DNA of 64,000 nucleotides, from positions 124,001 to 188,000 of the IMG/VR virus record IMGVR_UViG_3300045051_000720, one strand, 5' to 3'. A model generated the notes under the pieces. It did no database searches, had not been told where the DNA came from, and saw only the letters and a program-made list of their open reading frames with translations. A program made the translations under genes and the position numbers. Shown here in pieces: positions 7,010 through 57,106 of this stretch; within the stretch, counting starts at the first letter, position 1; every line of letters starts with the position of its first letter.

Positions 7010-8506
7010 ATGCGCTCTTATCCCAATGCCGCCGCAGCCCGCGCGGCCTGTATAAATCGTGGTGACGCCCAGTGGTTGCTCCCTATCGAGGGACGCCAAC
7101 CAGTCACGCTCATCGCCAACGACGAGATTTTTGTCGGGTTCGATGACAAGGTGTTCGAGCAGATCGTGAACGCCGCCGAGATGCCGGGCGCAGAGCGGGT
7201 AGTCATTGGGGCTGACGCGCACGTTGGCTTTGGCATCTGTGTGGGTACGACCGTGGTGTCGGAGACGCATGTTTATCCTCCCGTCGTGGGACCGGATGCA
7301 TGTTGTTCCCTCGCATTCCTCCAAACCGACCTGCCTGAGGATGCTATCAAGGACAAAACCGCGCGTCGTGCGCTCATCAATGCCATCACGGCGCGTATTC
7401 CCACGGGACTCGGCAATCGTCAAGCACCCAAGGCGCGCACGCTCAACCTTGAGGTACTGGTGTCAGTGGTTTGCGGAGGAGCGAGCGGGAACAATCTCCG
7501 CCTGTTAGGTATCCCCGAGGAGTGGGCGACTAAGTGCGAGCGGGCGGTCTATGGTCCTTCATTCGCGCGCCTGTCTGACCGCTTGCACGTCATCACCTGC
7601 GAACGCCCCGAGCTGTTACCTAAGTTGTTGGCTTTGGCGAGCTTAGGGGCCGGCAACCATTTTCTCAGCGGCGACATTGTGGACCTTGGCCGCATTGCCG
7701 GTACGCAAGGTCTCCCTGACGAGTTTGGTCTGCGTCAGGGTTGCTTCGGCTCGCTGTCGCATTGCGGGTCCAGAGGGTTTGGGTTTCAGTTGATGGCCTA
7801 TCATGAGCGCAAACTCAAGGCTCATTTTGAGCGGTGGGGCATTCCGTTTACAGGCGGCGATCACCACCTCATCTGCGCGCCCGTCGACACTCCTGAGGCG
7901 CGTGACTACATGCTCGACCTCGCGCTCGCGGCCAACTTCGCAGTCGTTAACCATCTCCTCATCCAAACCTATGTGTTGGAGGCCGTGCAGGAGGTTTTCC
8001 CCGGCGCGCGGGGCGACTTAGTCTATCACATCAGCCACAACGTGGGTCAACAAGAGGTCCTTGACGGACGACTCAAGTGGGTGTTCCGCAAGGGTGCGAC
8101 GCGGGCTTTCCCGGCAAACCATCCGGGGCTCAAGGGTTCTATCTATGAACGGATCGGTCATCCCATCCTACTGCCCGGCAACGCGCGCGATGGTAGTCTC
8201 ATCATGGTGGCACGACAGGGTGCCAAGACCGCCTCGTTTTCGGTCAACCACGGGGCCGGTAGATCGTTGGGGCGCAAAGAGGCTAAGCGGCGGTTGGTTC
8301 AGAAGGAGGTCGACCAAAATCTGCTTGACTCCGACGTAATGCACAATGGGCGGACTTACCCACTCGACGAGGCCCCGGGCGCCTACAAGGACTTCGATGA
8401 GGTCACGAGAAGCGTTGTGGCAGCAGGCCTTGCTACGGCTGTTGCGCGACTGACGCCGCGATTCGTTATCAAGGACTGTGATCCGTCACCGGAGGGCGCG
8501 GCATGA
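7010..8506 (+). CDS. rtcB: RtcB-family RNA ligase
   Basis: DAHVG, VGPDACC, LGAGNHF, HCGSRGFG, HNV, RKGAT, PGN, NHGAGR, EAPGAYKD. Confidence 0.93.
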   Translation: MRSYPNAAAARAACINRGDAQWLLPIEGRQPVTLIANDEIFVGFDDKVFEQIVNAAEMPGAERVVIGADAHVGFGICVGTTVVSETHVYPPVVGPDACCSLAFLQTDLPEDAIKDKTARRALINAITARIPTGLGNRQAPKARTLNLEVLVSVVCGGASGNNLRLLGIPEEWATKCERAVYGPSFARLSDRLHVITCERPELLPKLLALASLGAGNHFLSGDIVDLGRIAGTQGLPDEFGLRQGCFGSLSHCGSRGFGFQLMAYHERKLKAHFERWGIPFTGGDHHLICAPVDTPEARDYMLDLALAANFAVVNHLLIQTYVLEAVQEVFPGARGDLVYHISHNVGQQEVLDGRLKWVFRKGATRAFPANHPGLKGSIYERIGHPILLPGNARDGSLIMVARQGAKTASFSVNHGAGRSLGRKEAKRRLVQKEVDQNLLDSDVMHNGRTYPLDEAPGAYKDFDEVTRSVVAAGLATAVARLTPRFVIKDCDPSPEGAA

Positions 8507-10625: not shown

Positions 10626-11318
10626 ATGACCAAACCCTACTGCTACCACACCCCCGCGGAGGTCCGTGAGTCGGGCCTTCTCTCTGGTCGCATTGACGCC
10701 ATCGAGGCCGAGATCGAGTCCCGCATCTCCGAGCCGCGCACAGCCGATGGTAAGGTCATTACCAGTGCCAAGCTGGCGGCGTTTCCAGACGGCACGCTTC
10801 TGCTCTACCCCCGCATGGACCACGACCCTGAGGGTCGCTACATCCGGCGCGAGCTGATGGCGGCAGTGCTCACCCCCGACGAGTTAAAACTGGTCAACGA
10901 CCATTGTCTCAGCGCGCAGAGCGCGGCGCGTGATTTGGCGCGGCTGGAAAAGGCGACCAAGCTGGACCACTGGGATGGGTGGGTCACAGATGGGGATGGG
11001 TTCTGGGACTCGGTCGAGAGCTATCTCGACGAGAAGGGTGACGAGATCGAAACCGGCGCGGAGGAGGCGGTACCGCTATACCTGTGGGTCGCCGTACCCC
11101 AACAGGTTGTACCCCACCTTGACGTGGCGGGTGTGGTCGAGCATTGGATTGACGATCGGGGATGGGAAGACTGCGACCTCGGCGCGTTCGAGGGAGTCGA
11201 AACCCTCCAAGCCGCACTGGATGCCTTTGTGCAGGCCAATGCCAAGGTGGTGTCGTACAGCTCCGATTACACACGCGCCGTGATGCTCAACAGCTATCTT
11301 GCCCATGACCCTCGCTGA
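10626..11318 (+). CDS. Hypothetical acidic phage protein
   Basis: Start at the ATGA overlap (MTKPYCYH); the upstream in-frame extension in the ORF track overlaps the previous gene. Confidence 0.7.
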   Translation: MTKPYCYHTPAEVRESGLLSGRIDAIEAEIESRISEPRTADGKVITSAKLAAFPDGTLLLYPRMDHDPEGRYIRRELMAAVLTPDELKLVNDHCLSAQSAARDLARLEKATKLDHWDGWVTDGDGFWDSVESYLDEKGDEIETGAEEAVPLYLWVAVPQQVVPHLDVAGVVEHWIDDRGWEDCDLGAFEGVETLQAALDAFVQANAKVVSYSSDYTRAVMLNSYLAHDPR

Positions 11319-12710: not shown

Positions 12711-13682
12711 ATGCCACGCAAACGTGAGCGTTTTATCAAATGTGTTTACCTCGTCGGGTTCAAAGGTACACACAAGGTGTACATCGGGTCTAGCACACGT
12801 TGGCCATACCGGGCACGCGAACATCGCACAAATTTGCGTTTGGGTAAGCATCATAACGTCTATCTTCAACGCGCATATGCCGTCTACGGTCCTGAGGTAT
12901 GGGTTGAGGAATTAGAGCGTTTTGACGATGTGATAGCGATGCGCTACGGCGAACAAAAATGGATGGCTTTCTACCATAGTGACGACTCGAACTACGGTTA
13001 CAATCTTGTCCCAGAGGTAGTCAAATTCGGGACCTGTGGTTATCAATATACCCAAGCACAACGCACCGCGATGAGTCAGAAAAACAAAGAGAGGATGCAA
13101 GATTCAAAGGCTCGCCAAAAGGTGGCTAGTGGAGTTGCTCGCGTGTGGCGATACCAACCAGAGGTTTATCTTCAGAATCGAGTCGCGGCCAAAGAGTATG
13201 ATCTTTACGATCCGGAGGGATGCCGCGTGCATATCTGTGATCTTGGTCGATTTTGTCGAGAGCGCGGCTTGGTTTACGAAAAAATGTATAAGGTCGCTTC
13301 GGGGGTACGGATTGAATATGAAGGGTGGAAGCTGTATCCTGACCGTAAGAACAAGGTGAAGAAACCTTATGCGCTTATTAGCCCGTGGGGCGAGCGTTTT
13401 GAGGGCGTCGGGCTGCGCGCGTTCGCACTAAAGATGGGTTTACATCCTCGTACTATCGCCCTCGTCGTTCAAAAGCGAGTTAAGACGCACAAAGGATGGC
13501 GATGCGCTGACGTATCCGCCGATTGCGCTTTGGCCCATAAGGGACGCGACTATACGCTTATTGGTCCGTCAGGTGAGGAGATTCGTATCAATAACCTCAC
13601 GGCCTATTGCCGTAAGCACGGTTTATCATATGATATTATTCGCCACGGTGGACTGTCCCGGGGGTGGAAACGTAAAGAATGA
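12711..13682 (+). CDS. GIY-YIG homing endonuclease with three C-terminal DNA-binding repeats
   Basis: VYLVGFKGTHKVYIGSS..R..H, GYNL; three Y.L..P.G..L..FC...GL..GW repeats; looks AT-richer than flanks. Confidence 0.9.
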   Translation: MPRKRERFIKCVYLVGFKGTHKVYIGSSTRWPYRAREHRTNLRLGKHHNVYLQRAYAVYGPEVWVEELERFDDVIAMRYGEQKWMAFYHSDDSNYGYNLVPEVVKFGTCGYQYTQAQRTAMSQKNKERMQDSKARQKVASGVARVWRYQPEVYLQNRVAAKEYDLYDPEGCRVHICDLGRFCRERGLVYEKMYKVASGVRIEYEGWKLYPDRKNKVKKPYALISPWGERFEGVGLRAFALKMGLHPRTIALVVQKRVKTHKGWRCADVSADCALAHKGRDYTLIGPSGEEIRINNLTAYCRKHGLSYDIIRHGGLSRGWKRKE

Positions 13683-33203: not shown

Positions 33204-33254
33204 TACGCGTTTCCACGCATAGACACACCCCCTAAACCCTGCTATCCTCTCCCT

Positions 33255-34303: not shown

Positions 34304-34332
34304 TTGACACTCTTGGTCAATCCTGCTATACT
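34304..34332 (+). promoter_or_regulatory. Phage-type promoter driving the second tnpB
   Basis: TTGACA-17-TATACT with GTCAA palindrome; 7 nt to TTG 34340. Confidence 0.8.
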
Positions 34333-34339
34333 GTAACTG

Positions 34340-36109
34340 TTGAAGACTCTCATCTACCGCTTCCGACTTGCTCCTAGCGTGCATCAATGTGCCATGATTG
34401 AGGCGAGTAACACACAACTGTGTCGGGTATGGAATGCTTTAGTAGGTGCCACCAAGCACGCCGAGCACGAATGCAAGCATGGACGCAAGACTTGCGTGGT
34501 CAAGCGATTAACTGATTTGCTGACCCAGAAGAAAGTCGTCGGGATGCGCGCGGCTGCCGTGAAAAAGCTGGCAGAATCCAAAGCAATATCATTAACGGAT
34601 GCCAACAATCTTCTCACCCGCGAGCAGGTCGCCCGTGAGAGTCGCACGATTGTGCGCAAGAATGGAACCAAAGCGCGACGGTGTTCTATTCGTAAGCTGG
34701 CGTTGGCCTATGCCATTGCTACGGTAGGTCATCAGATCAACCGCTTCGGAGTGGAATCCGCCGCGTTTTGGGGAGTGATTGAAAAATTCAAAACCTCTAC
34801 CGCCGACTATCCATTGGGCAAACGGGGTGCGCCCCGATTCAAACGAGTGGGTGATAACGTGTCCATGCAGGCTCAGACCAAGAATCAACACGTCAAGGAG
34901 GGGGTCGTTGACCTATCGCGTTTAGTCGGTTCTAGTTGTTCCTGTGTCCACATGATTCAACACCGCCCGATTCCAGACGGCGCGATTGTCAAGCAGATGG
35001 CCGTGGTTAAGCAAAATGACCGGCTGTTTGTGGCCATCTTTGTTGATGTGCCAGATGCGGCGGCGCAAAAGAGTTTAATGGCAGCTAGTGGAGCGACGGC
35101 TGGTATTGATCCCGGCCGTAAGACGGCAGTGTCGCTCAGTTCTACAGACGGAACAATCCAACAGGTTGTCTCGCCCCCACTCTTGCGGGACAAACGGTTC
35201 ATGCGTCGCACGGCGCGGTTGGCACGCAAGTTGGACAGGCAACGCCGCTTTGCCAATCCAGACCGCTACAATGAGGATGGCACCTTCAAGCGCGGAGCGC
35301 GCGGTGTGTGGGTGACAACCAAGGGAATGACTAAGACCCAAAAGCGTGCGAACGATTTGCGTCGCCGTCTTGTGGATGTACGCACAGAGCACTATCGTCT
35401 CAAAGCGCGCGAAGTGTTGAATCAGTTTGACCACGTTGGGATCGGTACATGGCGGCCCAAGGGTGCGCCGGGTGAAGGACAAGCCAAACGCGCACAGTTG
35501 CGCAAGGACGCAGATAACGCTTTGGGTCAATTCGCGGGTATCCTTCGGGACTATGCTGCGCGCAATGTGACCCCCAAGAAGATCTACGATATCAATGAGG
35601 TCAACACCACCCGTCGTTGCATCAATTGTGGCGAGATGACGGGGCCGAGTGGGTTGTCCAACCTTGGGGTGCGCGAGTGGACGTGTTCCCACTGTGGTGC
35701 CCACCATCAGAGAGACTTTGCTAGTGCGCGAGCTATCGCTCTGCGCACTCAAATCGTGGCCGATACGCATTTGGTTAACGATGGTCCAACGACCAAAATT
35801 CAGCCTGTTCGTTATGCCGCAAAGCGTAACAAACGAAGTGGGTTGGTGGCGACACCAATCAATGTGCCCGTGGAACAGGAAGCGGAGGCCGCGAGGTCCC
35901 GTCTGAGTAAAAACGGTGCTCGTGCGAGTGCCCCAGTGGTAGACCATCCGGCCGATTGCACTCGCGTGCGAAAAGCCAATGCTGACGAAGGCTCTAGCAA
36001 TATCCTCGCGTCAGAGCCAGCTACCAATGCCTGCAAAGGTAACCATCGCTCGCATAGTTGCGCCGTAGAACTTGAGTCCACGGTAGTTGTGGAGGAACAC
36101 TCACTATGA
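34340..36109 (+). CDS. tnpB: Large TnpB/Cas12f-like protein with rearranged RuvC
   Basis: YRFRLAP..CRVWNALV; AGIDPGRK (RuvC-I); HVGIGTW where IED is expected; INEVNTTRRCINCG; WTCSHCG.HHQRD..SARAI; then about 110 aa of low-complexity tail. Confidence 0.85.
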   Translation: MKTLIYRFRLAPSVHQCAMIEASNTQLCRVWNALVGATKHAEHECKHGRKTCVVKRLTDLLTQKKVVGMRAAAVKKLAESKAISLTDANNLLTREQVARESRTIVRKNGTKARRCSIRKLALAYAIATVGHQINRFGVESAAFWGVIEKFKTSTADYPLGKRGAPRFKRVGDNVSMQAQTKNQHVKEGVVDLSRLVGSSCSCVHMIQHRPIPDGAIVKQMAVVKQNDRLFVAIFVDVPDAAAQKSLMAASGATAGIDPGRKTAVSLSSTDGTIQQVVSPPLLRDKRFMRRTARLARKLDRQRRFANPDRYNEDGTFKRGARGVWVTTKGMTKTQKRANDLRRRLVDVRTEHYRLKAREVLNQFDHVGIGTWRPKGAPGEGQAKRAQLRKDADNALGQFAGILRDYAARNVTPKKIYDINEVNTTRRCINCGEMTGPSGLSNLGVREWTCSHCGAHHQRDFASARAIALRTQIVADTHLVNDGPTTKIQPVRYAAKRNKRSGLVATPINVPVEQEAEAARSRLSKNGARASAPVVDHPADCTRVRKANADEGSSNILASEPATNACKGNHRSHSCAVELESTVVVEEHSL

Positions 36110-41282: not shown

Positions 41283-41945
41283 ATGAACGCTACATCCCCA
41301 ATCGCCACTGGCGATCTGAAGACGGACGGCAACTCGCCGCTCTCGACCGTACCCACCAACATCGATCAACGCCTCGCCGAGATCGAAACCGAACGCGCGC
41401 GGCTCGTCGCGCTTGATGAAGAAAAGAACCGTCTGCTTCGCGAGAAGGAGATCGCGCTGGCCAAGCGGCGGCAGGAGACCCTCGCCACGTTGCCCGGCCT
41501 GTTGCAGGTTGGGTCGCTCAATGAGGTGCTCGATCTGATCCGCAACAGCGGAACGGTGCGGCCCGCCGCTTCGCGCACGAGTGGCGCCCGTATCCCCGAA
41601 TCGACGCGCGCACAGGCCCGTCAGATGCTCGAAGCCGGTACGCCCGTCAACAAGGTCGCAAAGGCCTTGCGTATCGGCGAGGCCACGGTGTGGCTCTGGA
41701 AACGGAGCTGGGGTCTGACCAAGACCCGCACCGTGAAGGCCGCCAAGACCAAACCCGCCAAACGGCGCAACGCCCAGCCCGGCGCGCTGAGTGAAACCGA
41801 GCACGATCGGCTGATCGCGGAGCTGAAGGAGGGCAAGGTGCCCGTGGCGAAGCTGGCGAAGCAGTATCGCAGGTCGAGGGCGCGTATATATCAGATAGCC
41901 AACCACTTAGGCATCCCGACGCCCAGCCTGCGTCACGCCGCCTAG
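41283..41945 (+). CDS. H-NS-like coiled-coil plus two HTH DNA-binding protein
   Basis: N-terminal coiled coil, LPGLLQVGSLNEVL, RIPESTRAQARQMLEAG..VAKALRIGEATV, K/A-rich linker, second HTH. Confidence 0.6.
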   Translation: MNATSPIATGDLKTDGNSPLSTVPTNIDQRLAEIETERARLVALDEEKNRLLREKEIALAKRRQETLATLPGLLQVGSLNEVLDLIRNSGTVRPAASRTSGARIPESTRAQARQMLEAGTPVNKVAKALRIGEATVWLWKRSWGLTKTRTVKAAKTKPAKRRNAQPGALSETEHDRLIAELKEGKVPVAKLAKQYRRSRARIYQIANHLGIPTPSLRHAA

Positions 41946-41982: not shown

Positions 41983-42519
41983 ATGCTCGATCAAGCCACC
42001 CTCAAAGAGTGGGTTCATTACGACCCCGAGACCGGCGTTTTCACGCGCCTCAAGGTAAACACCGTACGGTGGCAGTGCCTTGTCGGACAACCAGTCACCA
42101 ATCGCCGTCACGGTTATATCCGCGTCTACATTGGGAGGCGGGAGTATCCGGCCCACCGCCTAGCATGGCTCTACATGACAGGGGCATGGCCGAAGGTACA
42201 ACTGGACCATATCAACCGCGTCAAGACCGACAATCGGTGGAGCAACCTGCGCGAGGCCACCATAGTTCAAAATGCCGGCAACGTTCCGCCCCAGCATCGT
42301 AAAACACATGGCCGTATGGGCAAGCAGTCCGGTGTCCGTGGTGTCTATTGGCGGGGAGGCTCACCCGTCGACACCAAATGGGTTGCTCATCTCGACAACA
42401 AGCACCTCGGCGCGTTTGATACCATCGACGAAGCCAAGGCGGCCTACGAGGCGGCAGCAAAGGCCAAATGGGGTGAGTTCGCGCACGTCTGGGACCTGAG
42501 AGAGTCAGTCCAGTCTTGA
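41983..42519 (+). CDS. HNH endonuclease with AP2-like domain
   Basis: AHRLAWLYMTG, DHINRVKTDNRWSNLREAT, GVRGV..W.A..LG.F..EA..AY; promoter TTGACA-17-TATGAT at 41949-41977. Confidence 0.92.
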   Translation: MLDQATLKEWVHYDPETGVFTRLKVNTVRWQCLVGQPVTNRRHGYIRVYIGRREYPAHRLAWLYMTGAWPKVQLDHINRVKTDNRWSNLREATIVQNAGNVPPQHRKTHGRMGKQSGVRGVYWRGGSPVDTKWVAHLDNKHLGAFDTIDEAKAAYEAAAKAKWGEFAHVWDLRESVQS

Positions 42520-42550: not shown

Positions 42551-44043
42551 GTGAAGAAGACACTGACATCGGGCAAGGCCCGGACCATTGGGAAGGGGCG
42601 CACTCGCCTTGACGCCGCCGAGAAACGCCGCGCCAACCGTGGCACGCGGCAAGTGCTCAAGCGCGAGACCGAGGTACTCGGCTGGCTGGGTCAACGCATC
42701 CCATGATCTACCTCGTCTCTGCCCACAACGCCATCGGCACCAAAAGCCGCGCGTTTGGCTGGTTCAGTACCGACCGCGAAGCCGACGAAGCTGTGGCCAA
42801 CGACATCGGTGGCCTGCGGGAGGCTCTGTATGACTGGGTGGTCATCGAGAGCCAACCGTCCGGCATCCACGCGACCGCGCGGGTGGTGAGGTGGTATAGA
42901 TGGGGTGATGGGTGGTATAGATCACGCACCGCGCCCGAGTGGGCGAAGGGGATGTGCAATCTGGGAGGGGTCGGATGACCCGACAACGCGCTTTCCAGAT
43001 CGCCCACCGCGAGGCGGGTCTCTGCACCCAGTGTTCTGAACCCGCGGCCAAGGGTGCGACTCGTTGTGCCAAGCACCTCAAGGCGGCGCGGCTGGAGGCA
43101 CGGAAGCGGGCGGGGTGCAAGGCTTGGCGGGCTGGTGCGAGGGGTCGCCCACCCAAAGGATAGCGGTTTAGTACCCCGCGAGACACCGCCCCGCTTTTTT
43201 CGCTTGACGGCGGTGGTCAACTCGGGTACCTTGGCGCCATGACCCAACGCACGACCATCCGCCAGATGTGGGAATACGGAGCAAACGCCGAAGGGTCATT
43301 GGTGCTAGCAAAACCCCTTGAGGGGTGGACCTGTAAAGGTCAATCCGTGTTGGTCGTGCCCTACAATCCAACCTGCCGTCTCGCCACGATCAAACGGACG
43401 ACCAAAACCCTCTGGCCACGCGCCAAGGGCAAGCGCCGTGAGGAGATGGAGGCGCTGGTGATGTACGTGCTCGGCACCGCTTTGACCCCATCTCGGCGCC
43501 CGCGCTGGATGCCATCAAGCGTGGGGTCAACGAAGCCGGGTTGGTTCTAGGGACTTGACCCTATAGACACCACCGCACGACCTGCTATCCTCCAGCCATG
43601 CTCACCAAATCTGACACCGAACTCTGCACCATCATCCTCAACCGATGGGCGAGTCGCACTCGCCGTGCGGAGGCCCTGACCACTTTGGTCACCCGCCGCG
43701 AGGCGACCTCTTACGAGGCGGGAGTCAGATATGGCCATGCGCGAGGCAGTGCCACGGCGGACGCACGGAGGGGACAATGACCCTTATCGATCTGCTCACC
43801 CGCGCCGGGAGCGACCTCAAGCACCAACGGCTTGACGAATCGTTCGTGTCCATGCGACAGAGAAAAACCCATGCTGAGGTTACTTTTTCGACCGAACCGG
43901 AGGTTGCGGCGCAACTCGCGCGCAGTATGTTGACTAATCAAGCGGCCGACTACGTGGGCATTGTCGTGTGGGTGCCGGCGTCGGCCTTCACTCAACACCG
44001 CGACGACGATCTCGTGATCAGAGGTCATTCGGCAACGCCTTGA
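42551..44043 (+). other. Run of small hypothetical CDSs behind three leaderless promoters
   Basis: 42551-42706 (promoter 42516-42544), 42703-42978, 42975-43163 (C..C..C..H), 43239-43550 (promoter 43204-43232), 43598-43780, 43777-44043. Confidence 0.7.
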
Positions 44044-47000
44044 ACGAAAATGGCTTACAAATGCTCAGACCCCAAGTGCGGTAAGGTCCAAGTTGCCTCC
44101 ACCCGTTGCCTAGCCTGTGGCGCGATCTGCTTGCCCCACGTCCTGCCGTGCTCGCCTGCTGGTGCCGATTGCGCTTCAACCACGATGCCGATCACTTCAC
44201 TACCTACAATTTGGGAGGCGTTCTGCGACGCCAGTTACTACGATATGTGGGCCGTGCGCCGCACAACCGAGACCGGCTGGGGTGAGTGCTTCCACCTCAA
44301 CAGCAAGGCTGAGGCCGAAGGGCTGACCAAGCTGCTCAATGACCACAGTGTGCCTTGAGGACGAAAACATGGACCTCGCTGACTACCTTCGCCGCATCGC
44401 CGCCGTTCCGCTGACCTCCGGAACCACGCGCTACGTTCCCGCGTTGTGCCGTCCTTGGCGGCGCAAACAGTGAATGACATGACCTTCATCGTCATTAGCT
44501 GCCTCGCGGCGCTATTCGTTATGCTGTTCGCACACAACGATTGCCGGTAGAACGAACCTGACATGAAAAATCCATTCGACGCCAACCTAAGCAACGACGC
44601 CCTGCGCGAGATTCGCGCCATACTAGAGCGCGAGATGGCCGAACTCATGCGGGTCACTTCTCTTTGCTCTTACGCGCCCGCAATCGAAACGGGCCGCGCC
44701 AACATCGCCAAGGTTCGTAGCCTTATCGCCGCCATCGACGCCGCCCAGTCCTGAACGACCATGAGCAAAATCCCCGACGCATTAGACCTCGCTCGCGAGG
44801 CACTTGACGAAGCCGAGTCCGAGATCAACGCGGTGCTTGATAGCTCGACACCGGAATGGCGTGCGCTTCACGCGCTTCATTCCGCGCTATCCTATCTGCG
44901 GATCGCAATCCGCGAAAACCGCGATTCAACAGCCCGCGCCGCGAACGTCGCAAGCTGTCTCGCCAACGGAATCCAGCCGGACTGACAGAACGAACCATCT
45001 TACGCCCCCTTGAGGCTTAGCCACTCTGGCACTCACCGGGGCACGCTTTAACCGAACGAGCCATCTTGACCATGAGCATTATTCGAGGCCATTGCTTCAC
45101 CAACTTAGACGAGTACAAGCACGAGGAGTGGCCGGAAGCGTTTGTCGCCGTGCCGCGCGAAGGCGCTTCGCTCTATCGCTGACAACGTGGATTCCTGACC
45201 CGCGAACGAACCGAACCGATGACCAACGACGAGCGAGATTTACTTGTGAAAGTGCTATGCACGCAGGACGGGCGCGGGCCTGTCGTGAAACGTAACTCGA
45301 TGCGTTGCTCATTGCTGAGCGTGTCGAGATCCAGCGCGAGAATGCCAAGCTGCGCGAGGAAATTGCCCGACGGAACCGACTCGACCAAATGCCGCACCAC
45401 CACGGCGCAACGGCCTCGGAGTGAGGCGAACGAAGCTATGAACGACAACTGCACCCCATGGCAGGCAACGCCAGCAGGCGACCTGCGGAACCAGATAATG
45501 AACTCCAACATCCCGAAGAACGAGCGGGAGTGGTGGGCAGCGCGCTGCATAAAAGAACTTGAACGCAAGAACGCCAAGCTGCACGAGGCGCTGACAAAAG
45601 CGGAAGCGCACGACGAATCACTCCACGCTTTCGACGACCTGCAATGCTTTGTCGATGACCCTGACACGCGTAACGAGTATTGGCCTGAATACTGCCGCCG
45701 CTGCAACCAACGGCAGGCGCTTGGAACGTCGTGAACGAAAATATGGACACACCACTATTCAGACCCGAAGCGGTTGCGGCATTTAACGCATTCGCCGAGG
45801 CGTTATCAGGGGCGCCGGAAATCCGTCGCCTTACCGCAGTAATCGACTCGCACCATCAGCTCGCGGCCAAATGCCGTTCGCTGCTTTACAACGGCGGAGC
45901 CGGGCCGAATGCCTCACAGCTTCAGCGGGTGGACGCCATGCTCCGCACCATCGCCGGCCTGCCGCCAACCTGACCCGAACAAACCATGAGCGCCCCAACC
46001 TGTCCCCGTTGTGCCTCGCATCGCGTGTCCCGTGTGGGACTGCGCCGCTACGTGTGTGCCGCGTGCGGCAAGGCGTGGAGCGTTCGCAAACCGGCCTGCA
46101 ATTGCCGCCAGTGCCGAACCAAACGCGGATGGAAGTAGGTCCATCGAACGATATGCAAATCGAACTCGTGAGCGGCCCGTACAACGGGCGACGAATCGAA
46201 GACTTGGGAACGGTCGCAATCCGCATGGAGATAGCGGAGCGTTGGCCGCAGCAGGATGGCGACAAGTGCGGTGCTGCCGTGTACGAGCCGAATGCCGAGC
46301 GCACACACGCATTCTGGCTGAACAACGTGTGGGACGGAACCCACGTCGAAACAATCGAGTAACCGAACGAACATGAAACGACTCCGCACCAAGTTTACCG
46401 ACGATTTCCACTTCCGCCGCGCGCTGGAAACCGAACTCAAGCAGCGCATCGCCGACCGTGACTGGCTCAACCGGCAAATCAGACATATCCGTGCCGTCCT
46501 GCGGCTGCGTACGAACTGAATGACATGCACTCGCTTTATTGGCTTTTCTTCCGCTCCCTCGCGTGCCGCCCCAGCATCGGGTTGCGCTGGCGTGTGTGGG
46601 CATGGATTAGCCGGCGCATTTCAGCCGCGAAGCACCGGGCGCGCGGCAACAAGTTTTAACCGAACGAAGGGGCTGATTTTACCATGAACAAGGTCATCAC
46701 CGACGAGATGGTTGCGCAGCTTTCCAAACTCGAAAAGCTGCTGTTTTCTCTGCACCGCGACGAGTCCGACGCCGTGGCGTATAACCAACTCGGCTACGCA
46801 TGGATCAGCTTGAAGCAGGCCCGCGAAGCGATTTTAGGCGAGATGCGCGACGAGCATTTGCTGGGCGAGCAAATCGACGTGTGGAAAGTCTCGGATGGCT
46901 CGTCATCGTATTACACGACCGACGAAGCCGCCGCGAAAACCGAGGCCGAAGGCTGCGACGACATCACCATTTCGCGCGTGAGAATGGCGCGGAAGATTTA

Positions 47001-47790
47001 CGACAACCTGCCCGAGTTCGCGGGCTTCTGAGGCGAACGAACAATCACACCGATGAATCTATCCGAACTGAGGGGTTACAAACGCGGGCAGCGCGAGGGT
47101 GAGAAAATGCGCGCTCAACTGTTGCGCATGGCTGACTGGCTCGCGCGAACCCGCGCTGCTGCGCTCAAAATGGAGCAGCAGAACCGCGGCCGTTTCGACT
47201 CGCTCGCCGACTCTTGCAAGGCCGATGCGGCCAACGCGGAGAAGATGGAACGCGATTGCCGGGATGCGGCGAAGTAAACCACCGGAACGAAAAGGAACTA
47301 TGACTTGGCACACTCTTTCCAGCATTTACCACGGCACCCGCCTCACTGAATTGCTCGCCGCCGCGTGTGACGATGGCATCGGCATCATCGCTCGCTGGAC
47401 CCGTCGCGAAGACGGCGCGTGGGATGTTGAGGCAATGGACACCGAAGGCACAGACGGCATGAAGCCAGTGACGGAGTTTGACGAAGGCGAGTCGGTGCCA
47501 CCGGAGCCGCCATCGGCGGAGGCGGAGCCAAAAGCAGAGGACGAGAGCGAGATTTGGCCACCATGCCCCAAGTGTGGCAGTCAGCAGAGTTACGCGGTTG
47601 TCGGCACCCAGCGACGGTGCTGTACCAACTGCCGAACTAAGTTCTGGCCGGAGACCAACGCAACCAAATGAACAAAGACCACAACTGGGAGGCATGGAAA
47701 TCCGGCTTCATGAGCGGAGCGTTTCTAGCGATCTGCGTCATGTGCAGCATCATCTACCTCGTGACCCACTGGACCCGTTGAACGAAACGA
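44042..47790 (+). repeat. Dispersed GAACGA(A) motif at gene junctions
   Basis: GAACGAA at 44042, 44550, 44988, 45204, 45428, 45733, 46365, 46662, 47035, 47285, 47780; variants at 44753, 45054, 45977, 46146; mostly between a stop and the next start. Confidence 0.75.
44050..47781 (+). other. Cluster of very small CDSs, mostly not ATGA-coupled
   Basis: 44050-44358, 44563-44754, 44761-44985, 45438-45734, 45743-45973, 45986-46138 (Zn ribbon), 46153-46362, 46373-46519, 46684-47031, 47053-47277, 47300-47671, 47668-47781 (TM). Confidence 0.65.
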
Positions 47791-47829: not shown

Positions 47830-47875
47830 TTTTCGACATCCAACGACAGGCCTTTTCGACATCCAACGACAGGCC
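47830..47875. repeat. 23-bp perfect tandem duplication
   Basis: TTTTCGACATCCAACGACAGGCC twice. Confidence 0.9.
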
Positions 47876-47892: not shown

Positions 47893-49182
47893 ATGAACAA
47901 CGACATTGCCTCGCGCATCCTCGCTTCGATTGCCGCCCTTCCGGTGCATGAGCAAGCCGATGCGATTTCATCCCTCATCGGCTCGGCGCTCTATCAGATG
48001 CCCCTAGCTACGGTCAACGAGGTCCGCGCCGAGATCGCGGGCCAGTTCGATCCCACCATTCCAATTGTCCGCACCACACTCGATCTGATTGATGGGCATC
48101 TGGCGCTGCGCGAGATCGGCGCGATCAACGAGCCATGACCGAGGTCGCACGCCACCTTTCCAATCTGTCGTCGGTCCCGGGCTGGAACCTGACCACGGAC
48201 AAGGTCACCGCGCGGGCGTTATTGGCGCACGAGTGGGTGTTCTGTCAGGGCGACATGCGGGACATCTGCGTTCGGCATCTCGGGCTGGGCGTGTACAAGG
48301 TCTGGACGGAACCACGATGACTGGCTGGCGCACCTTCCGCTGCGCGTGCGGGCTGGCCTTTGAGGAGGCCACTCGCGACGCGCTTTCTCCTTCGCTCACT
48401 ATCTGCCCGCGCTGCAATGAGGAGTGTTTTCCTGATGCTCATCGACTTGACGATCTGGCCACCCACATGGGCAACCTGACCATGCCATGGTCGGCGCGGG
48501 TGAGGGTTTTGGGGGATTTGCCCTAGAGACAACGCCATCTGATCTGCTACCTTTTCACCATGTCCACCCATTTCCCTCAATCCTCCGGTGGGTCCATCTA
48601 CTTCCCCTGTTCACCCGACCAGTTCGCGGTGTTCAAGCGGGGCGATAGGGTCGTGCGCACAGCGGTCAGCGTCCCCTCTTCCTTTGAGTGGATAGAGAGC
48701 GGTGAGCCGCCGCAGAAGGACAAGGTCTATGTGGTTCGCGACTACCACTACGGCTACGCCGAGACCAACGGCGGTCGCCCCCCTGTCTATGGCCAAATCC
48801 TCAATCTGGTCGAGTGCGTGTGTCATAGGACCCCGCAAGGACTTGAATACGGCTGGTTTCACGCGGGTTTTCGTAAGGTGACCGAGGAGGAGATCGCCGC
48901 GCGAGTGGCCCAGACACAGGAGGTTTCTTTATGACCACATCTATACCCCAATGGGTTCTCGACGCCGCCTCCGAGATCGGAGGGATCGGCGAGCATGGTG
49001 TCCAGCGCACCGCCCAGATCATCGCCAAGCACTGCCGCGCGAGTGATCGCTACCGGGCTGCTCTGGTCGCGCTGGTGGGTTCCGATGATCCCAAGACCCT
49101 GCGGGGCATCCGCGCCTATACGGTTCAGTATGCCCCCAACGAGACCGCCATTCTCAACGCCATCGATCTGTTGCTCGAATGA
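47893..49182 (+). other. Run of small hypothetical CDSs
   Basis: 47893-48138, 48135-48320, 48317-48526, 48560-48934, 48931-49182. Confidence 0.7.
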
Positions 49183-50631: not shown

Positions 50632-50709
50632 CACATTATCTCCAATAGGCACCTACGCTCAGACAATCACGTCAACGAGCATCACTCGTGACCGAACGAG
50701 ACAACGCAC

Positions 50710-51372
50710 ATGCAAAAGTATAATATCGCACTCGTTGGGGCAAATCCGCTCCTTCTTCATCACGACAACATCTCGTGGGCTGGGCTCATGAACGAATGGA
50801 ATACGGACCCCGCGAACAAAGCCAAGTCCGTCGCGGGCGACGACCGCACTCCCGCTCACCGTTGGATTGGTTGTCTATACCACGAGGGTGGTCGTCTCAT
50901 CGTCCCCAGCGATAACCTCATGACTATGCTGCGTGAGGGTGGCGCGCGATGTCCGACTGGAAAGAAAGGCGCGACGTTCAAACGTCAGACCCAATCCGGG
51001 CTGGTTGTCGACCAGAGCGGATGGTCCTTGACTGTTGATGGCAAGGAAATCCCCTATGATCCTATTGCCAAGCTTATCGACGAGCCCGACTTCACCAAGC
51101 ACGAGAAGACGGTAGCGAAGATGGGTTTTGCGCTGTTTGTTAAACGCGCCCGTGTCAACCAGACCAAACATGTCCGTGTGCGTCCTCGGTTCGACCGTTG
51201 GGAGGCGGCGGGCTCCATTACCGTGTTCGACGATACTATCACTGACCGCGTACTCGAAGACATCCTCAAGTTTGGAGGTCGTTACGCCGGTCTTGGCGAT
51301 TGGCGTCCATCATCCCCGAAATCCCCCGGACCATTCGGAACCTTCACGGTGACCGTTTCCCCCGCATCATGA
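50710..51372 (+). CDS. RAMP/Cas7-like RNA-binding protein (Vipr-like)
   Basis: N-terminal IALVGANPLLLH strand; RVRPRFDRWE..ITV; C-terminal Gly-rich loop GGRYAGLGDWRP..GPFGTFTV; next to the pentamer array. Confidence 0.75.
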   Translation: MQKYNIALVGANPLLLHHDNISWAGLMNEWNTDPANKAKSVAGDDRTPAHRWIGCLYHEGGRLIVPSDNLMTMLREGGARCPTGKKGATFKRQTQSGLVVDQSGWSLTVDGKEIPYDPIAKLIDEPDFTKHEKTVAKMGFALFVKRARVNQTKHVRVRPRFDRWEAAGSITVFDDTITDRVLEDILKFGGRYAGLGDWRPSSPKSPGPFGTFTVTVSPAS

Positions 51373-51842
51373 GCGCAACAACCAAACTCTTCGGCGGCGG
51401 CGTTCCTACTCAACCCGAGGTTGAAAGCCTGATCAAACGATTTGGTGTTCCTGCGGTAGGGACATCGATTCTCTATGTCGATATTGCGGCTACCATTGGA
51501 CATCCTGTTCGTAGCAATCGCTATCTCGCTGTAGTATCAAGGTGGCGTAAACGTCTGTTCCAGCAGCATAATCTATTGCTGGACCCTATTCATGGTGAAT
51601 CCTATACGGTCTGTAACAACAGCCAACGTATTTCCCACAGCACTGGCAAGTACAAAAGCGGCCTTCGGCATATTCGACGTGCGTCCGAAGTAGCTGCTCG
51701 GACCGACACAGAAGGATTGCTTCCCGACGAGATGCGGGCTCGCGACCATATCGTCAAGACCGGTAATGCTTTGCAGCTAGCGGCGGCCACTGCCGCACGG
51801 CAACTCAAATATGTTGCGCCGGGGCTACCTCAGTCAACGTGA
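51369..51842 (+). CDS. Partner protein coupled to the RAMP-like gene, possible winged helix
   Basis: ATGA overlap; same atypical codon style; VGTSILY..IA..G..RY..VVSRWRKRL..L..G.SY. Confidence 0.65.
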   Translation: MSATTKLFGGGVPTQPEVESLIKRFGVPAVGTSILYVDIAATIGHPVRSNRYLAVVSRWRKRLFQQHNLLLDPIHGESYTVCNNSQRISHSTGKYKSGLRHIRRASEVAARTDTEGLLPDEMRARDHIVKTGNALQLAAATAARQLKYVAPGLPQST

Positions 51843-51864
51843 AGATGTCACGTACCGTTTTACC

Positions 51865-52302
51865 ATGACCATCGTTGACACCTCCACCCGCCTCCCCACC
51901 ACCCCCGGACCCTACGCGGTTCTGGTCAAACCCGCACAGGGCTACCACCGCGCCATTGAGACCGGCGTGAGCTGGGATGGGTCATGGAAAGGGACCGATG
52001 ATCCCGTCGTCGCGTGGGTTGACACCGCCGCGCGCGTTGCCGTTGTGCCTTCTCCGACTCAGGCGGTTGAACCCTCATCCTATTCCCTCACCCTCGTGGG
52101 CTTCGATCCTACCAGCAAGATCGGCGTGATCAAGCTCGTGCGCGAGCTGACGGGGCTCGGGTTGGCTGAATCCAAAGCGACGGTCGAGGCCCTTGCGATC
52201 AAACCCCTCATGATCAAGGAGAATGCTTCTCGCGCCGAGGTAACCGCACTGGACACCCGTCTGCGCGCGGCGGGTGGGGTGACCAAACTGGAGGCCGTAT
52301 GA
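51865..52302 (+). CDS. Ribosomal protein bL12 (L7/L12) C-terminal domain fused to a phage N-terminal domain
   Basis: YSLTLVG..KIGVIKLVRELTGLGLAESKATVE..P.MIKENASRAE..L.AAGG. Confidence 0.88.
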   Translation: MTIVDTSTRLPTTPGPYAVLVKPAQGYHRAIETGVSWDGSWKGTDDPVVAWVDTAARVAVVPSPTQAVEPSSYSLTLVGFDPTSKIGVIKLVRELTGLGLAESKATVEALAIKPLMIKENASRAEVTALDTRLRAAGGVTKLEAV

Positions 52303-57040: not shown

Positions 57041-57106
57041 TATTCCCCAGCCATATGAGGGACACACCCTATGGTGTTCCACCGCCGGTCTGCTATACTA
57101 GACACC

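Follow-up and report, generated by a model that had tools for sequence, protein, structure and literature searches.

GAACGAA, a stop-linked heptamer between tiny genes in arrays of uncultured phages

In a 3.7-kb run of tiny genes in an uncultured phage genome, the ATGA stop-start coupling common elsewhere gives way to short spacers that carry the motif GAACGA, which raises the question of what this motif marks and how it might act. The analysed stretch, termed the window, comprises 64,000 nucleotides (positions 124,001 to 188,000 of IMG/VR virus record IMGVR_UViG_3300045051_000720). To test whether the motif is enriched at gene junctions over background, as the earlier note had demanded, its copies were counted inside and outside the island. 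GAACGA occurs 33 times on the plus strand of the window, and 16 of these copies lie in 44,042-47,786 (6% of the window), with none on the minus strand there. The heptamer GAACGAA occurs 12 times on the plus strand, 11 of them in the island. Over the whole window and both strands, 52 copies were found against 38.3 +/- 6.3 expected. Of the 16 island copies, 14 lie in intergenic spacers of an array of about 17 tiny genes and two are located within genes (45440, 45518), while two further junctions carry one-mismatch variants. Only 1 of 17 island junctions is an ATGA overlap, in comparison to 57 of 104 outside. The tiny ORFs are real genes, as all 18 score best in their annotated frame and their GC3 of 0.72 compares with 0.75 in core genes. 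The observation of the earlier note is therefore confirmed and turned out to be broader than reported. The features of the locus, all on the plus strand, are as follows.

43564-43591 (+), sigma70-like promoter (TAGACA-16-TG-TATCCT; 9/12 match with TG extension) at the head of the operon that contains the island; its TGCTATCCT box ends 6 nt before the ATG at 43598, so the first gene would be leaderless
43598-43780 (+), first ORF of the operon, 60 aa; the annotated frame scores best
43777-44043 (+), 88-aa gene (phrog_6851, unknown function), ATGA-coupled to the previous ORF, its TGA overlapped by the first heptamer
44042-44048 (+), GAACGAA copy 1, overlapping the TGA at 44041-44043, 1 nt before the ATG at 44050
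44050-44358 (+), array gene, 102 aa, Cys-rich
44359-44365 (+), one-mismatch variant GGACGAA directly after the TGA at 44356-44358
44369-44473 (+), array gene, 34 aa
44471-44481 (+), motif-less junction variant TGAATGACATG, with an identical copy at 46517-46527
44479-44550 (+), array gene, 23 aa, hydrophobic
44550-44556 (+), GAACGAA copy 2, overlapping a TAG
44563-44754 (+), array gene, 63 aa
44753-44759 (+), GAACGAC copy 3, overlapping a TGA
44761-44985 (+), array gene, 74 aa
44988-44994 (+), GAACGAA copy 4, 2 nt after the TGA, opening the pseudo-cassette
44986-45071 (+), pseudo or 'empty' cassette, an 86-nt spacer with no credible ORF, bounded by GAACGA(A/G)CCATCTT repeats
45054-45060 (+), GAACGAG copy 5, preceded by TTTAACC
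45072-45182 (+), array gene, 36 aa
45204-45210 (+), GAACGAA copy 6, the only island copy far from the annotated stop (21 nt), although an out-of-frame TGA lies 5 nt upstream of it
45219-45424 (+), frameshifted gene, read in two frames that switch near 45290-45305, a tandem paralogue of the next gene (RENAKLREE against RKNAKLHEA)
45428-45434 (+), GAACGAA copy 7, within TGAGGCGAACGAA (identical 13-mer at 47029)
45438-45734 (+), array gene, 98 aa
45733-45739 (+), GAACGAA copy 8, overlapping a TGA
45743-45973 (+), array gene, 76 aa
45977-45983 (+), one-mismatch variant GAACAAA, 3 nt after the TGA
45986-46138 (+), array gene, 50 aa, zinc-ribbon-like
46146-46152 (+), GAACGAT copy 9, abutting the ATG at 46153
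46153-46362 (+), array gene, 69 aa
46365-46371 (+), GAACGAA copy 10 (TAACCGAACGAA)
46373-46519 (+), array gene, 48 aa
46525-46659 (+), array gene, 44 aa, preceded by the TGAATGACATG junction
46662-46668 (+), GAACGAA copy 11 (TTTTAACCGAACGAA)
46684-47031 (+), array gene, 115 aa, with homologues at 75-77% identity in sequence L003 and in the array of phage genome L004
47035-47041 (+), GAACGAA copy 12, the point where homology to L004 and L003 ends
47053-47277 (+), array gene, 74 aa
47285-47291 (+), GAACGAA copy 13
47300-47671 (+), array gene, 123 aa, with a widespread N-terminal domain of about 72 aa plus a zinc ribbon; a 61% homologue sits in the array of phage genome L151
47668-47781 (+), last array gene, 37 aa, at the only ATGA-overlapped junction in the island
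47780-47786 (+), GAACGAA copy 14, overlapping the TGA of the last gene, with no gene following for 111 nt
47830-47875 (+), perfect 23-bp tandem duplication (TTTTCGACATCCAACGACAGGCC x2) between the array and the next gene at 47893, possibly a regulatory site of the next unit and not part of the motif system
50694-50700 (+), isolated junction copy GAACGAG, 2 nt after a TGA and 9 nt before the ATG at 50710

Several details of the earlier note were verified, namely the GAACGA(A/G)CCATCTT repeats at 44988 and 45054 that flank a 66-nt unit without a credible ORF, the 23-bp duplication near the end of the island, the presence of CCGAACGAG at 50692-50700 before the gene at 50710, and the absence of an attC-like palindrome; no inverted repeat of any kind was found associated with the motif. 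Other details had to be corrected. One stop-to-motif distance is 21 nt (45182 to 45204) and falls outside the proposed 0-10 nt, the preceding CC is not conserved, the motif tracks the upstream stop rather than the downstream ATG, and the designation 'RAMP-like' for the gene at 50710-51372 has no support from Pfam or NCBIfam.

The conserved unit is a stand-alone heptamer. Only 7 nt are conserved (about 13 bits), no spaced partner was detected from -45 to +55, and the mean information outside the 7-mer is 0.09 bit. No palindrome or hairpin was found, and the motif is moderately unpaired (unpaired probability 0.58). Analysis of 44 junctions from six genomes revealed that the heptamer is anchored to the upstream stop codon and not to the start. 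In 42 of these junctions the motif lies -2 to +9 nt from the stop, while the distance to the start ranges from 0 to 107 nt with the mode at 0-2 nt. In 16 of 18 spacers of at least 20 nt the motif is found in the 5' half, and uniform placement was rejected in all of 200,000 trials. The minimal junction TGAACGAATG keeps the whole heptamer rather than collapsing to ATGA. The motif lies upstream of 41 ATG and 3 GTG starts, but also follows terminal genes that have no downstream gene for 79-111 nt (position 47780 of the window and position 11385 of L151), and in L004 it is located 22-66 nt before the next start. Outside the arrays, a mild depletion of the sense strand was observed (3 copies against 8.5 expected, P=0.03), with no depletion on the antisense strand.

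The same architecture marks similar gene arrays in at least five other unrelated uncultured phages. The five metagenomic phage genomes, designated L004/L005, L017, L081/L147, L148 and L151, have 59-63% GC and share no backbone genes. GAACGA emerged unprompted as the top post-stop 6-mer in L017 and L081. Three single-gene cassettes are shared between arrays with different neighbours, and homology stops at the heptamer. The L147/L148 homology starts at G1 of one heptamer and ends at the next heptamer, and the homology between the window, L004 and L003 ends at 47039-47041, although the 5' breakpoint of the window against L004 lies inside the ORF. In L147 the array is wedged between terS and terL next to a tyrosine recombinase, which is a generic Xer-like enzyme and not IntI. 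Within the window, no recombinase-sized gene was found within about 6 kb of the island. The motif is thus a real and apparently undescribed punctuation mark, for which any function is inferred from sequence alone.

The interpretation offered in the earlier note is partly supported. It had proposed scars of a site-specific gene-shuffling system, a translation or RNA-processing signal like the start-associated sequences (SAS) of cluster K mycobacteriophages, or a donor-specific ribosome-binding motif. The cassette-like behaviour required by the first proposal is real, but the machinery expected of a site-specific system is absent. The second proposal is the closest in spirit and belongs to the class of explanation preferred here, yet the geometry is the opposite of SAS, as the motif is stop-anchored with a variable distance to the ATG and has no Shine-Dalgarno core. 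The third proposal is not supported, as codon usage in the island is native, the spacing is not Shine-Dalgarno-like, a reference (E. coli) 16S rRNA has no UUYGUUY complement, and the motif also follows genes without a close downstream gene.

Comparison with described systems showed that the motif is not an integron site, a Shine-Dalgarno sequence or a promoter, and neither a cluster K SAS nor an L5 stoperator, although the latter two are the nearest analogues. SAS/ESAS elements (PMC3203893) are likewise short asymmetric repeats in one orientation, with 11-19 copies per genome restricted to the non-structural half; they sit in the tiny gaps between genes, sometimes include the upstream stop codon, show a strong ATG preference, are associated with genes of different families and have no proven function. 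However, SAS is 13 bp long (GGGATAGGAGCCC), contains a Shine-Dalgarno core, sits a fixed 3-7 bp from the start, has 17-bp inverted repeats at half of its copies and is confined to one phage cluster, whereas GAACGAA is 7 nt long without such a core or extension and is shared by unrelated phages. The stoperators of cluster A mycobacteriophages (L5 gp71-type repressors; PMC9283540) are also asymmetric sites in short intergenic spaces, present in many copies, oriented with transcription and frequently overlapping stop codons. They are 13 bp long, bound by a two-domain monomeric repressor, spread over the whole genome including promoters, and vary in sequence with immunity group, whereas here 7 bp are conserved in one contiguous array, the sequence is identical across unrelated phages and no repressor was identified. 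Integron gene cassettes resemble the island in their co-oriented, promoter-less, mostly tiny ORFs of unknown function downstream of one promoter, each followed by a site with a 7-nt conserved core, in the sharing of single cassettes between arrays with different neighbours, and in empty and duplicated cassettes. In the arrays studied here there is no attC palindrome (the spacers are only 5-25 nt long) and no inverse core, the window has no IntI and the L147 recombinase is not integron-type. PeSL (promoter-early/stem-loop) cassettes in hyperplastic regions of T4-type phages and the 'boundary/linker' sequences of lambdoid phages are repeated intergenic elements that flank small accessory ORFs and are thought to promote modular shuffling between phages; PeSLs are 50-70 bp and contain a promoter and a hairpin, while neither was found here and only 7 nt are shared. 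The GGAG targets of the T4 RegB endoribonuclease are a short linear RNA motif concentrated between early or accessory cistrons, but GGAG is there because it is the Shine-Dalgarno sequence; GAACGAA is not, and no nuclease is known for it. Finally, the ribosome termination structure (PMC7518266) is a control element placed immediately 3' of the stop codon that decides between re-initiation and insulation in operons, but it is a stable secondary structure with no sequence consensus, whereas GAACGAA is a sequence with no structure.

Several other explanations were weighed. An action at the DNA level as a cassette junction is possible but doubtful. In this view the heptamer, with its occasional 12-18-nt extended sub-families, would be the crossover or microhomology site through which single genes are inserted, deleted, duplicated and swapped between arrays of co-infecting phages, an integron-like gene-capture logic without attC hairpins in which each mobile unit is an ORF plus its 3' heptamer. 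The unit is indeed a gene plus a 3' tag, including the last gene of the array, with a tag at the head of the array, and this reading is further supported by the shared cassettes and their breakpoints, the pseudo-cassette with its duplicated GAACGARCCATCTT, the tandem paralogue pair, the position of the L147 array and junction sub-families shared by non-homologous genes (TGAGGCGAACGAA and TTTTAACC(G)GAACGAA). On the other hand, no flanking recombinase-binding arms, inverted repeats or hairpins were found, the window has no recombinase-sized gene within about 6 kb of the island, the L147 enzyme is not IntI-like, 7 nt is too short for known phage homologous recombination, breakpoints at gene borders are expected in phage mosaicism anyway, one 5' breakpoint (window against L004) lies inside the ORF, and the near-perfect conservation of each copy is hard to maintain by rare recombination events alone. 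Less likely is a stoperator-like site for a repressor or roadblock protein that stops RNA polymerase between genes and silences the accessory array until it is needed. The asymmetry, single orientation, intergenic placement and stop codon overlap match published properties of stoperators (PMC9283540; PMC3203893), L147 carries an integrase-family gene, L004 has a Cro/CI-type HTH gene inside the array, and a protein with two HTH motifs lies 2 kb upstream of the island. Besides the short conserved sequence and the confinement to one array, it speaks against this reading that the identical sequence occurs in unrelated phages, whereas repressor-specific sites normally diverge with immunity type, that no shared DNA-binding protein was found among the sequences examined, and that the stop-proximal bias in long spacers is not required.

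An endoribonuclease site appears equally unlikely. A sequence-specific phage- or host-encoded RNase would cut the polycistronic mRNA at each heptamer, as T4 RegB does at intergenic GGAG, and either release monocistronic, near-leaderless mRNAs or shut the array off. A linear, unstructured, sense-strand motif and its depletion outside the arrays fit this model, which also tolerates any distance to the next start and explains the copies after terminal genes, and half of the junctions would yield leaders of 7 nt or less in a host that evidently translates leaderless mRNAs. Nevertheless, housekeeping RNases are not known to have 7-nt specificity, no shared nuclease gene was found, anchoring to the stop is not what a generator of leaderless mRNAs would need, and a cut within a heptamer that overlaps TGA or TAG could destroy the stop codon. 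A start-associated signal for the downstream gene, either a non-Shine-Dalgarno ribosome-binding site or enhancer or a motif imported with foreign genes, is improbable. The motif is purine- and A-rich, unpaired and located upstream of start codons, and most array genes lack a Shine-Dalgarno sequence, but in long spacers it sits at the far end from the start, other uncoupled genes of the same genomes do not use it, and the spacing, the terminal copies, the reference 16S rRNA and the native codon usage argue against it as outlined above. An artefact of chance, composition or coding repeats is effectively refuted. In low-GC viral contigs the same heptamer is purely coding, with ATGAACGAACGAATT encoding MNERI... 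in tiny paralogues, which shows that the string can be enriched for trivial reasons. In the six genomes with about 60% GC, however, the copies are non-coding and flank non-homologous genes, and 42 copies were found in 15 kb of arrays against about 1 expected.

The explanation preferred here, which remains tentative, is that GAACGAA is a sense-strand mRNA punctuation signal that closes each cistron in promoter-less arrays of accessory genes. In the window, the sigma70-type promoter (43564-43591) probably gives a long polycistronic mRNA whose first gene is leaderless. Elsewhere in this genome internal genes are translated through ATGA overlaps, and other uncoupled genes have a -10 box 6-7 nt before the start; the sequence TGCTATMCT occurs four times, all on the plus strand (0.3 expected), each 6-7 nt before a start codon. 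The array genes, in contrast, mostly do not overlap, mostly lack a Shine-Dalgarno sequence and have no promoter of their own, while the heptamer sits within reach of the terminating ribosome. Coupling by termination-reinitiation is known to collapse at gaps of about 20 nt (PMC10666635), so non-overlapping cistrons need something extra, and the region just 3' of stops is a known control point for re-initiation (PMC7518266). The near-perfect conservation of each copy argues for a function used in every infection, and the identical heptamer in genomes without shared backbone genes points to a common host factor. The analysis itself establishes the motif, its strand specificity, its stop-anchoring, the lack of any partner element or structure, its recurrence in six unrelated genomes and cassette sharing with breakpoints at the motif. 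In contrast, it is inferred that the heptamer acts on RNA, that it acts at termination or re-initiation and that its reader is a host factor; the computational data do not distinguish RNA-level from DNA-level action, and no reader was identified. The reference 16S rRNA lacking a complement and the copies after terminal genes or, in L004, 22-66 nt before the next start also speak against this reading, as re-initiation is inefficient at such distances in the tested model organisms (PMC10666635). Hints to the host are limited to a 38%-identical backbone protein in an Opitutaceae prophage that lacks the motif and to the source sample, which is rice-root iron plaque. We propose that the heptamer would be read on the mRNA at or just after translation termination by a factor common to the hosts of these phages, either the ribosome itself or a ribosome-associated RNA-binding factor, and would hand the ribosome over to the next cistron or insulate one cistron from the next. 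Any gene carrying its own 3' heptamer could then be plugged into such an operon and still be expressed, and the tag at the 3' end of every gene would also define portable single-gene cassettes, a consequence that would explain the exchange seen between arrays.

The window comprises bases 124,001-188,000 of a 219-kb jumbo-phage contig (IMGVR_UViG_3300045051_000720), which originates from a rice-root iron-plaque metagenome. Nearly all genes of the window are located on the + strand and include replication-type genes (DnaB, RtcB, a Pol III alpha-like polymerase and a PD-(D/E)XK nuclease), a TnpB-like gene, an HNH-AP2 endonuclease and a protein with an L7/L12 C-terminal domain. No cultured phage was found to be related. 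A nucleotide search of the island against GenBank phages returned no match, tblastn searches with the 230-aa, 123-aa and 115-aa proteins revealed no cultured relatives, and the Pol III alpha-like protein remained below 30% identity. Neither tRNAs nor any curated Rfam covariance model (0 hits at gathering threshold) were detected in the entire window. Searches against Pfam, PHROGs and NCBIfam provided nothing useful for the island proteins beyond zinc ribbons and one PHROG of unknown function. The following features of the window were used or observed in this analysis:

10626-11318: member of a 230-aa phage protein family (L004 10370-11050; L017 10001-10681) with more than 90 homologs in metagenomes and one in Opitutaceae TAV4 prophages, which folds with a pLDDT of 92 in structure prediction but has no Pfam family and no PDB fold match by Foldseek; it lies adjacent to the arrays in L004 and L017.
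33240-33248, 34324-34332, 43583-43591 and 57091-57099 (+): extended -10 box TGCTATMCT.
34340-36109: long (589 aa) TnpB/Cas12f-like protein (OrfB_IS605 plus TNB domain) with a TTG start behind one of the leaderless-type promoters; the non-coding stretch just 3' of it may encode its guide RNA.
41283-41945: protein with two transposase/resolvase-type HTH motifs but no catalytic domain, about 2 kb upstream of the island.
41983-42519: HNH-AP2 homing-endonuclease-like gene following the two-HTH protein.
44,042-47,786 (+): island of tiny genes with GAACGA(A) junctions.
45219-45424: frameshifted copy of a tandem paralog pair inside the array, which could be a pseudogene, a sequencing error or a programmed frameshift.
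47830-47875: perfect 23-bp tandem duplication, unique in the window, in the 111-nt gap between the array and the next gene, which may be an operator or iteron of the next unit.
50692-50700: isolated copy of the motif outside the island.
51811-52302: 163-aa protein whose C-terminal 70 residues are a ribosomal L7/L12 C-terminal domain (Pfam 5e-14; NCBIfam L12 5e-13, below cut-off) fused to an unknown N-terminal half; as L12 C-terminal domains recruit translational GTPases, this may be a phage factor that tampers with host translation.

The observation made in the earlier note, an island of tiny genes separated by GAACGA(A), holds. GAACGA occurs 33 times on the + strand of the window and 16 of these copies are found in 44,042-47,786, with none on the - strand there, while GAACGAA occurs 12 times with 11 copies in the island. 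The island is an array of about 17 genes of 23-123 aa, plus two leading genes. All 18 ORFs score best in their annotated frame with a coding model trained on the long genes and their GC3 (0.72) matches that of the core genes (0.75), so they are genuine, native-looking genes. Fourteen junctions carry GAACGA(A), two carry one-mismatch variants, two carry an identical TGAATGACATG junction and one is an ATGA overlap. Outside the island, 57 of 104 junctions are overlaps and essentially one (50694) has the motif. The 66-nt 'empty' unit, the 23-bp duplication and the copy at 50692-50700 are all as the note described them. The most enriched post-stop 6-mer genome-wide is ACCCCC/CACCCC (10 against 1 expected), as many ATGA-coupled genes start with ATGACC(CC) (Met-Thr-Pro), which is a coding side-effect of overlap coupling.

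Alignment of 35 sites revealed information only at the seven positions GAACGAA, with position 7 being A in 31 of 35 sites. The mean information elsewhere from -45 to +55 is 0.09 bit, the highest value is 0.35 bit and no spaced partner exists. This excludes bipartite promoters of the sigma70, ECF (GAAC..CGT) or sigma54 type and any attC-like or recombinase-arm architecture. No inverted repeats are associated with the motif and no flanking hairpin was found. The motif is moderately unpaired (0.58), which equals the accessibility of in-gene copies.

The heptamer follows the stop codon and not the start codon. Over 44 junctions in six genomes, the motif starts -2 to +9 nt from the upstream stop in 42 cases, with the overlap T-GAACGAA as the mode, while the distance to the next start ranges from 0 to 107 nt with its mode at 0-2 nt. 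In 16 of 18 spacers of at least 20 nt the motif lies in the 5' half, and uniform placement never reproduced this in 200,000 trials. The last gene of an array is also followed by the heptamer, although no gene follows for 79-111 nt (window 47780; 11385 in the metagenomic phage contig L151). The shortest junctions (TGAACGAATG, TAGAACGAATG) pack stop, heptamer and start into 10-11 nt rather than collapsing to ATGA. Examples of natural junctions are TGAACGAAAATG and TAACCGAACGAA+15 nt+ATG.

A sigma70-like promoter at 43564-43591 with an extended -10 box (TGCTATCCT, 43583-43591) ends 6 nt before the ATG at 43598. The box TGCTATMCT occurs four times in the window (0.3 expected), always on the + strand and 6-7 nt before a start codon, which implies leaderless first genes, and several other genes have a TANNNT box at the same distance. 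No promoter-like site lies between the array genes, and the one terminator-like match on the + strand (44498-44510) falls inside the 23-aa gene and is below the chance rate. These phages therefore use three junction types, namely ATGA overlaps, spacers with a -10 box for leaderless starts and GAACGAA spacers. A start-anchored -10-like box was observed in L142/L143/L144, a 52% GC relative carrying the 230-aa family, in which about ten genes are preceded by (C)TAACT(T), then about 6 nt, then ATG, suggesting one leaderless transcript per gene. This locus also carries a HipA-like toxin gene.

The motif is not private to this phage. A homolog of the 115-aa gene led to the contig L004/L005, which has 8 GAACGAA copies on the + strand, all just after stops in the uncoupled 3' half. 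A backbone gene shared by the window and L004 led to L017, with 5 consecutive junctions. A protein-independent pattern scan of IMG/VR identified L081/L147, an HK97-like siphovirus in which 8 consecutive junctions of an accessory array (methyltransferases and small ORFs) lie between a terS-like gene and an integrase-family gene followed by terL, while the ATGA-coupled structural genes have no copy. The MT-A70 gene of that array led to L148, and the 123-aa gene of the window led to L151, with 10 consecutive junctions. All six genomes have 59-63% GC, and GAACGA emerges unprompted as the top post-stop 6-mer in L017 and L081. Relatives of the same gene families in phages of other GC content and the Opitutaceae prophages lack the motif. 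The pattern scan, which required 3 copies, was saturated by unrelated coding or long repeats (the MNERIKEL paralogs, L102, L111 and L131), so that it provides no prevalence estimate. Many of its low-GC hits are a different, coding repeat family, in which ATGAACGAACGAATT encodes the N-terminus MNERI... of tiny paralogs (ATGAACGAA coding cases). In the IMG/VR contigs L022, L082, L085, L036, L117 and L030 (35-42% GC), arrays of such tiny paralogous genes all start ATGAACGAACGAATTAAAGAACTT (MNERIKEL...) behind a GGAG Shine-Dalgarno sequence. L102, a viral contig with 50% GC, contains at 7097-8100 an unexplained structured array of six repeats of about 100 nt of the form GGTTCTCTGAACGAA(A/G)CCGCTTCGCAAGAGGCGGTTTCC, each with a hairpin. 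In L151, large near-palindromes (…GTGCGTGACA(T/A)AACC(C/T)AGCTGCTAGG…) at 8031-8112 and 13259-13321 lie in the spacers that open two gene runs and look like operators, and GTACTTCTTTTCTCCCTACA-ATG occurs twice (2115, 2761).

Three gene families occur singly in arrays of unrelated phages with different neighbors, namely the 115-aa gene (window and L004), MT-A70 (L147 and L148) and the 123/128-aa gene (window and L151). For the 115-aa gene, nucleotide homology between the window, L004 and the array-less contig L003 ends at 47039-47041, which is the downstream heptamer, and L003 keeps only a decayed TAACG there. For MT-A70, identity between L147 and L148 jumps from chance level to 83-88% exactly at G1 of the upstream heptamer and runs to the downstream TGAAC(G/A)AA. 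One 5' boundary (window against L004) lies inside the ORF because of an N-terminal fusion. Within the window, a pseudo-cassette is bounded by GAACGARCCATCTT and a tandem paralog pair has one frameshifted copy. In addition, junction sub-families extend the identity to 12-18 nt and include the stop codon (TGAGGCGAACGAA and TTTTAACC(G)GAACGAA), the latter being also present in L004. The interpretation offered by the earlier note is supported in part. Lack of enrichment at junctions and breakpoints away from the motif had been set beforehand as grounds for rejecting it, but the motif is enriched at junctions and the breakpoints do coincide with it.

The element was compared with the systems that it most resembles. 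Integrons share co-oriented, promoter-less cassettes behind a common promoter, as all array genes are on the + strand behind the promoter-like site at 43564-43591, and they share the occurrence of individual cassettes in different arrays with different neighbors. However, the element is not an integron. An attC site, an imperfect palindrome of about 55-141 bp with core and inverse core after each ORF, is absent from spacers of 5-25 nt, and the window has no recombinase-sized gene within about 6 kb of the island. The neighbors scanned gave no IntI-type hit, and the recombinase next to the L147 array matches only generic Xer models, far below cut-off, and no integron-integrase model. The start-associated sequences (SAS) of cluster K mycobacteriophages (PMC3203893) share the single orientation (0 copies on the - strand in the arrays), the location among non-structural, accessory genes and the ATG preference (41 of 44 downstream starts), but they have a 13-bp consensus, GGGATAGGAGCCC, that contains an SD core and is fixed 3-7 bp upstream of the start codon. 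The stoperators of cluster A phages (PMC9283540) share the short intergenic location with an orientation tied to transcription, but they are 13-bp asymmetric sites spread over the genome including the early promoter, while GAACGAA copies are confined to one contiguous array per genome and none lies in the promoter at 43564-43591. Stoperators are bound by a monomeric repressor with an HTH and a stoperator domain, and no repressor candidate is shared among the genomes. GAACGAA is a member of neither the SAS nor the stoperator family, although these two are its nearest analogs. PeSL or moron-type cassettes carry their own promoter and stem-loop terminator in each spacer, neither of which was found here, and the spacers are too short. 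The motif is not a Shine-Dalgarno site, as its spacing differs from the expected value of about 5-9 nt and GAACGAA has no complement (UUYGUUY) in a reference 16S rRNA, in which only two 6-mers match, both in variable helices. Pairing with an antisense or sRNA seed was considered and rejected; the only non-coding TTCGTTC (36121) lies just 3' of the TnpB-like gene. The literature library searched contained no mention of the motif in such a role.

The near-perfect conservation of each copy, the strict sense orientation and the identity across unrelated phages argue for recognition in every infection by a factor shared through the host. Placement within the footprint of the terminating ribosome points in the same direction, as does the absence in the arrays of overlaps, SDs and promoters. 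Termination-reinitiation fails at gaps of about 20 nt (PMC10666635) and the region just 3' of stops is an established control point for re-initiation (PMC7518266). An mRNA-level punctuation signal acting at termination and hand-over is therefore tentatively favored, and cassette portability would follow from each gene carrying its own 3' tag. A mild depletion of the heptamer from the sense strand outside arrays (3 observed against 8.5 expected, P=0.03; antisense 5 against 7.7) fits an orientation-specific activity. While the element, its geometry, its recurrence and the breakpoints were established from the sequences, its function, its action on mRNA and its recognition by a host factor are inferred. 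The copies after terminal genes, the 22-66-nt distances in L004 and the lack of an identified reader speak against the favored reading. BLASTP and phmmer comparisons among the window, L004, L017, L147 and L151 found only the cassette genes and the 230-aa backbone gene, which is also present in relatives without the motif, and no trans-factor candidate shared by the six genomes was found in the partial sequences examined. Two scans of genome contigs with the 230-aa family did not identify a host, and the only hints are a 38%-identical homolog in Opitutaceae TAV4 prophages, which lack the motif, and the rice-root source sample.

The rival explanations cannot be excluded computationally. A recombination or microhomology junction is possible but considered somewhat less likely than the favored reading, a stoperator-like DNA roadblock, whose binding protein would be inferred by analogy only, and a RegB-like cleavage site are both doubtful, and a start-linked translation signal is improbable. 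A further reading, likewise doubtful, is that GAACGAA is the 3' tag of a minimal mobile gene-cassette system in phages. The same 7-nt element would then make a promoter-less gene expressible in any tagged operon and would also serve as the junction through which single genes move between arrays of unrelated phages that share a host. This would be a functional counterpart of integrons that needs neither attC hairpins nor a dedicated integrase.

The heptamer is a real, statistically overwhelming and apparently undescribed intergenic element. Short asymmetric intergenic repeats are known from mycobacteriophages, and the element differs from them in being a bare heptamer, anchored to stop codons, confined to accessory-gene arrays and shared across unrelated phages that exchange single cassettes. 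It adds a third, geometrically distinct case to the two known phage intergenic repeat families, the stoperators and the SAS, the mechanism of the latter still being open. In practice, the tag is a search key for accessory or early gene arrays and their correct tiny-gene boundaries in metagenomic phage genomes of this group, and a handle for identifying their still unknown host. Phage accessory regions full of tiny unknown genes are where anti-defense and host-takeover functions are found, yet how such genes are added to operons without breaking expression is poorly understood. A 7-nt, stop-anchored tag shared by unrelated phages would be a simple plug-in rule for gene expression in hosts that rely on leaderless and overlap-coupled translation, and if it also mediates exchange, it would be a new route of gene flow between phages.
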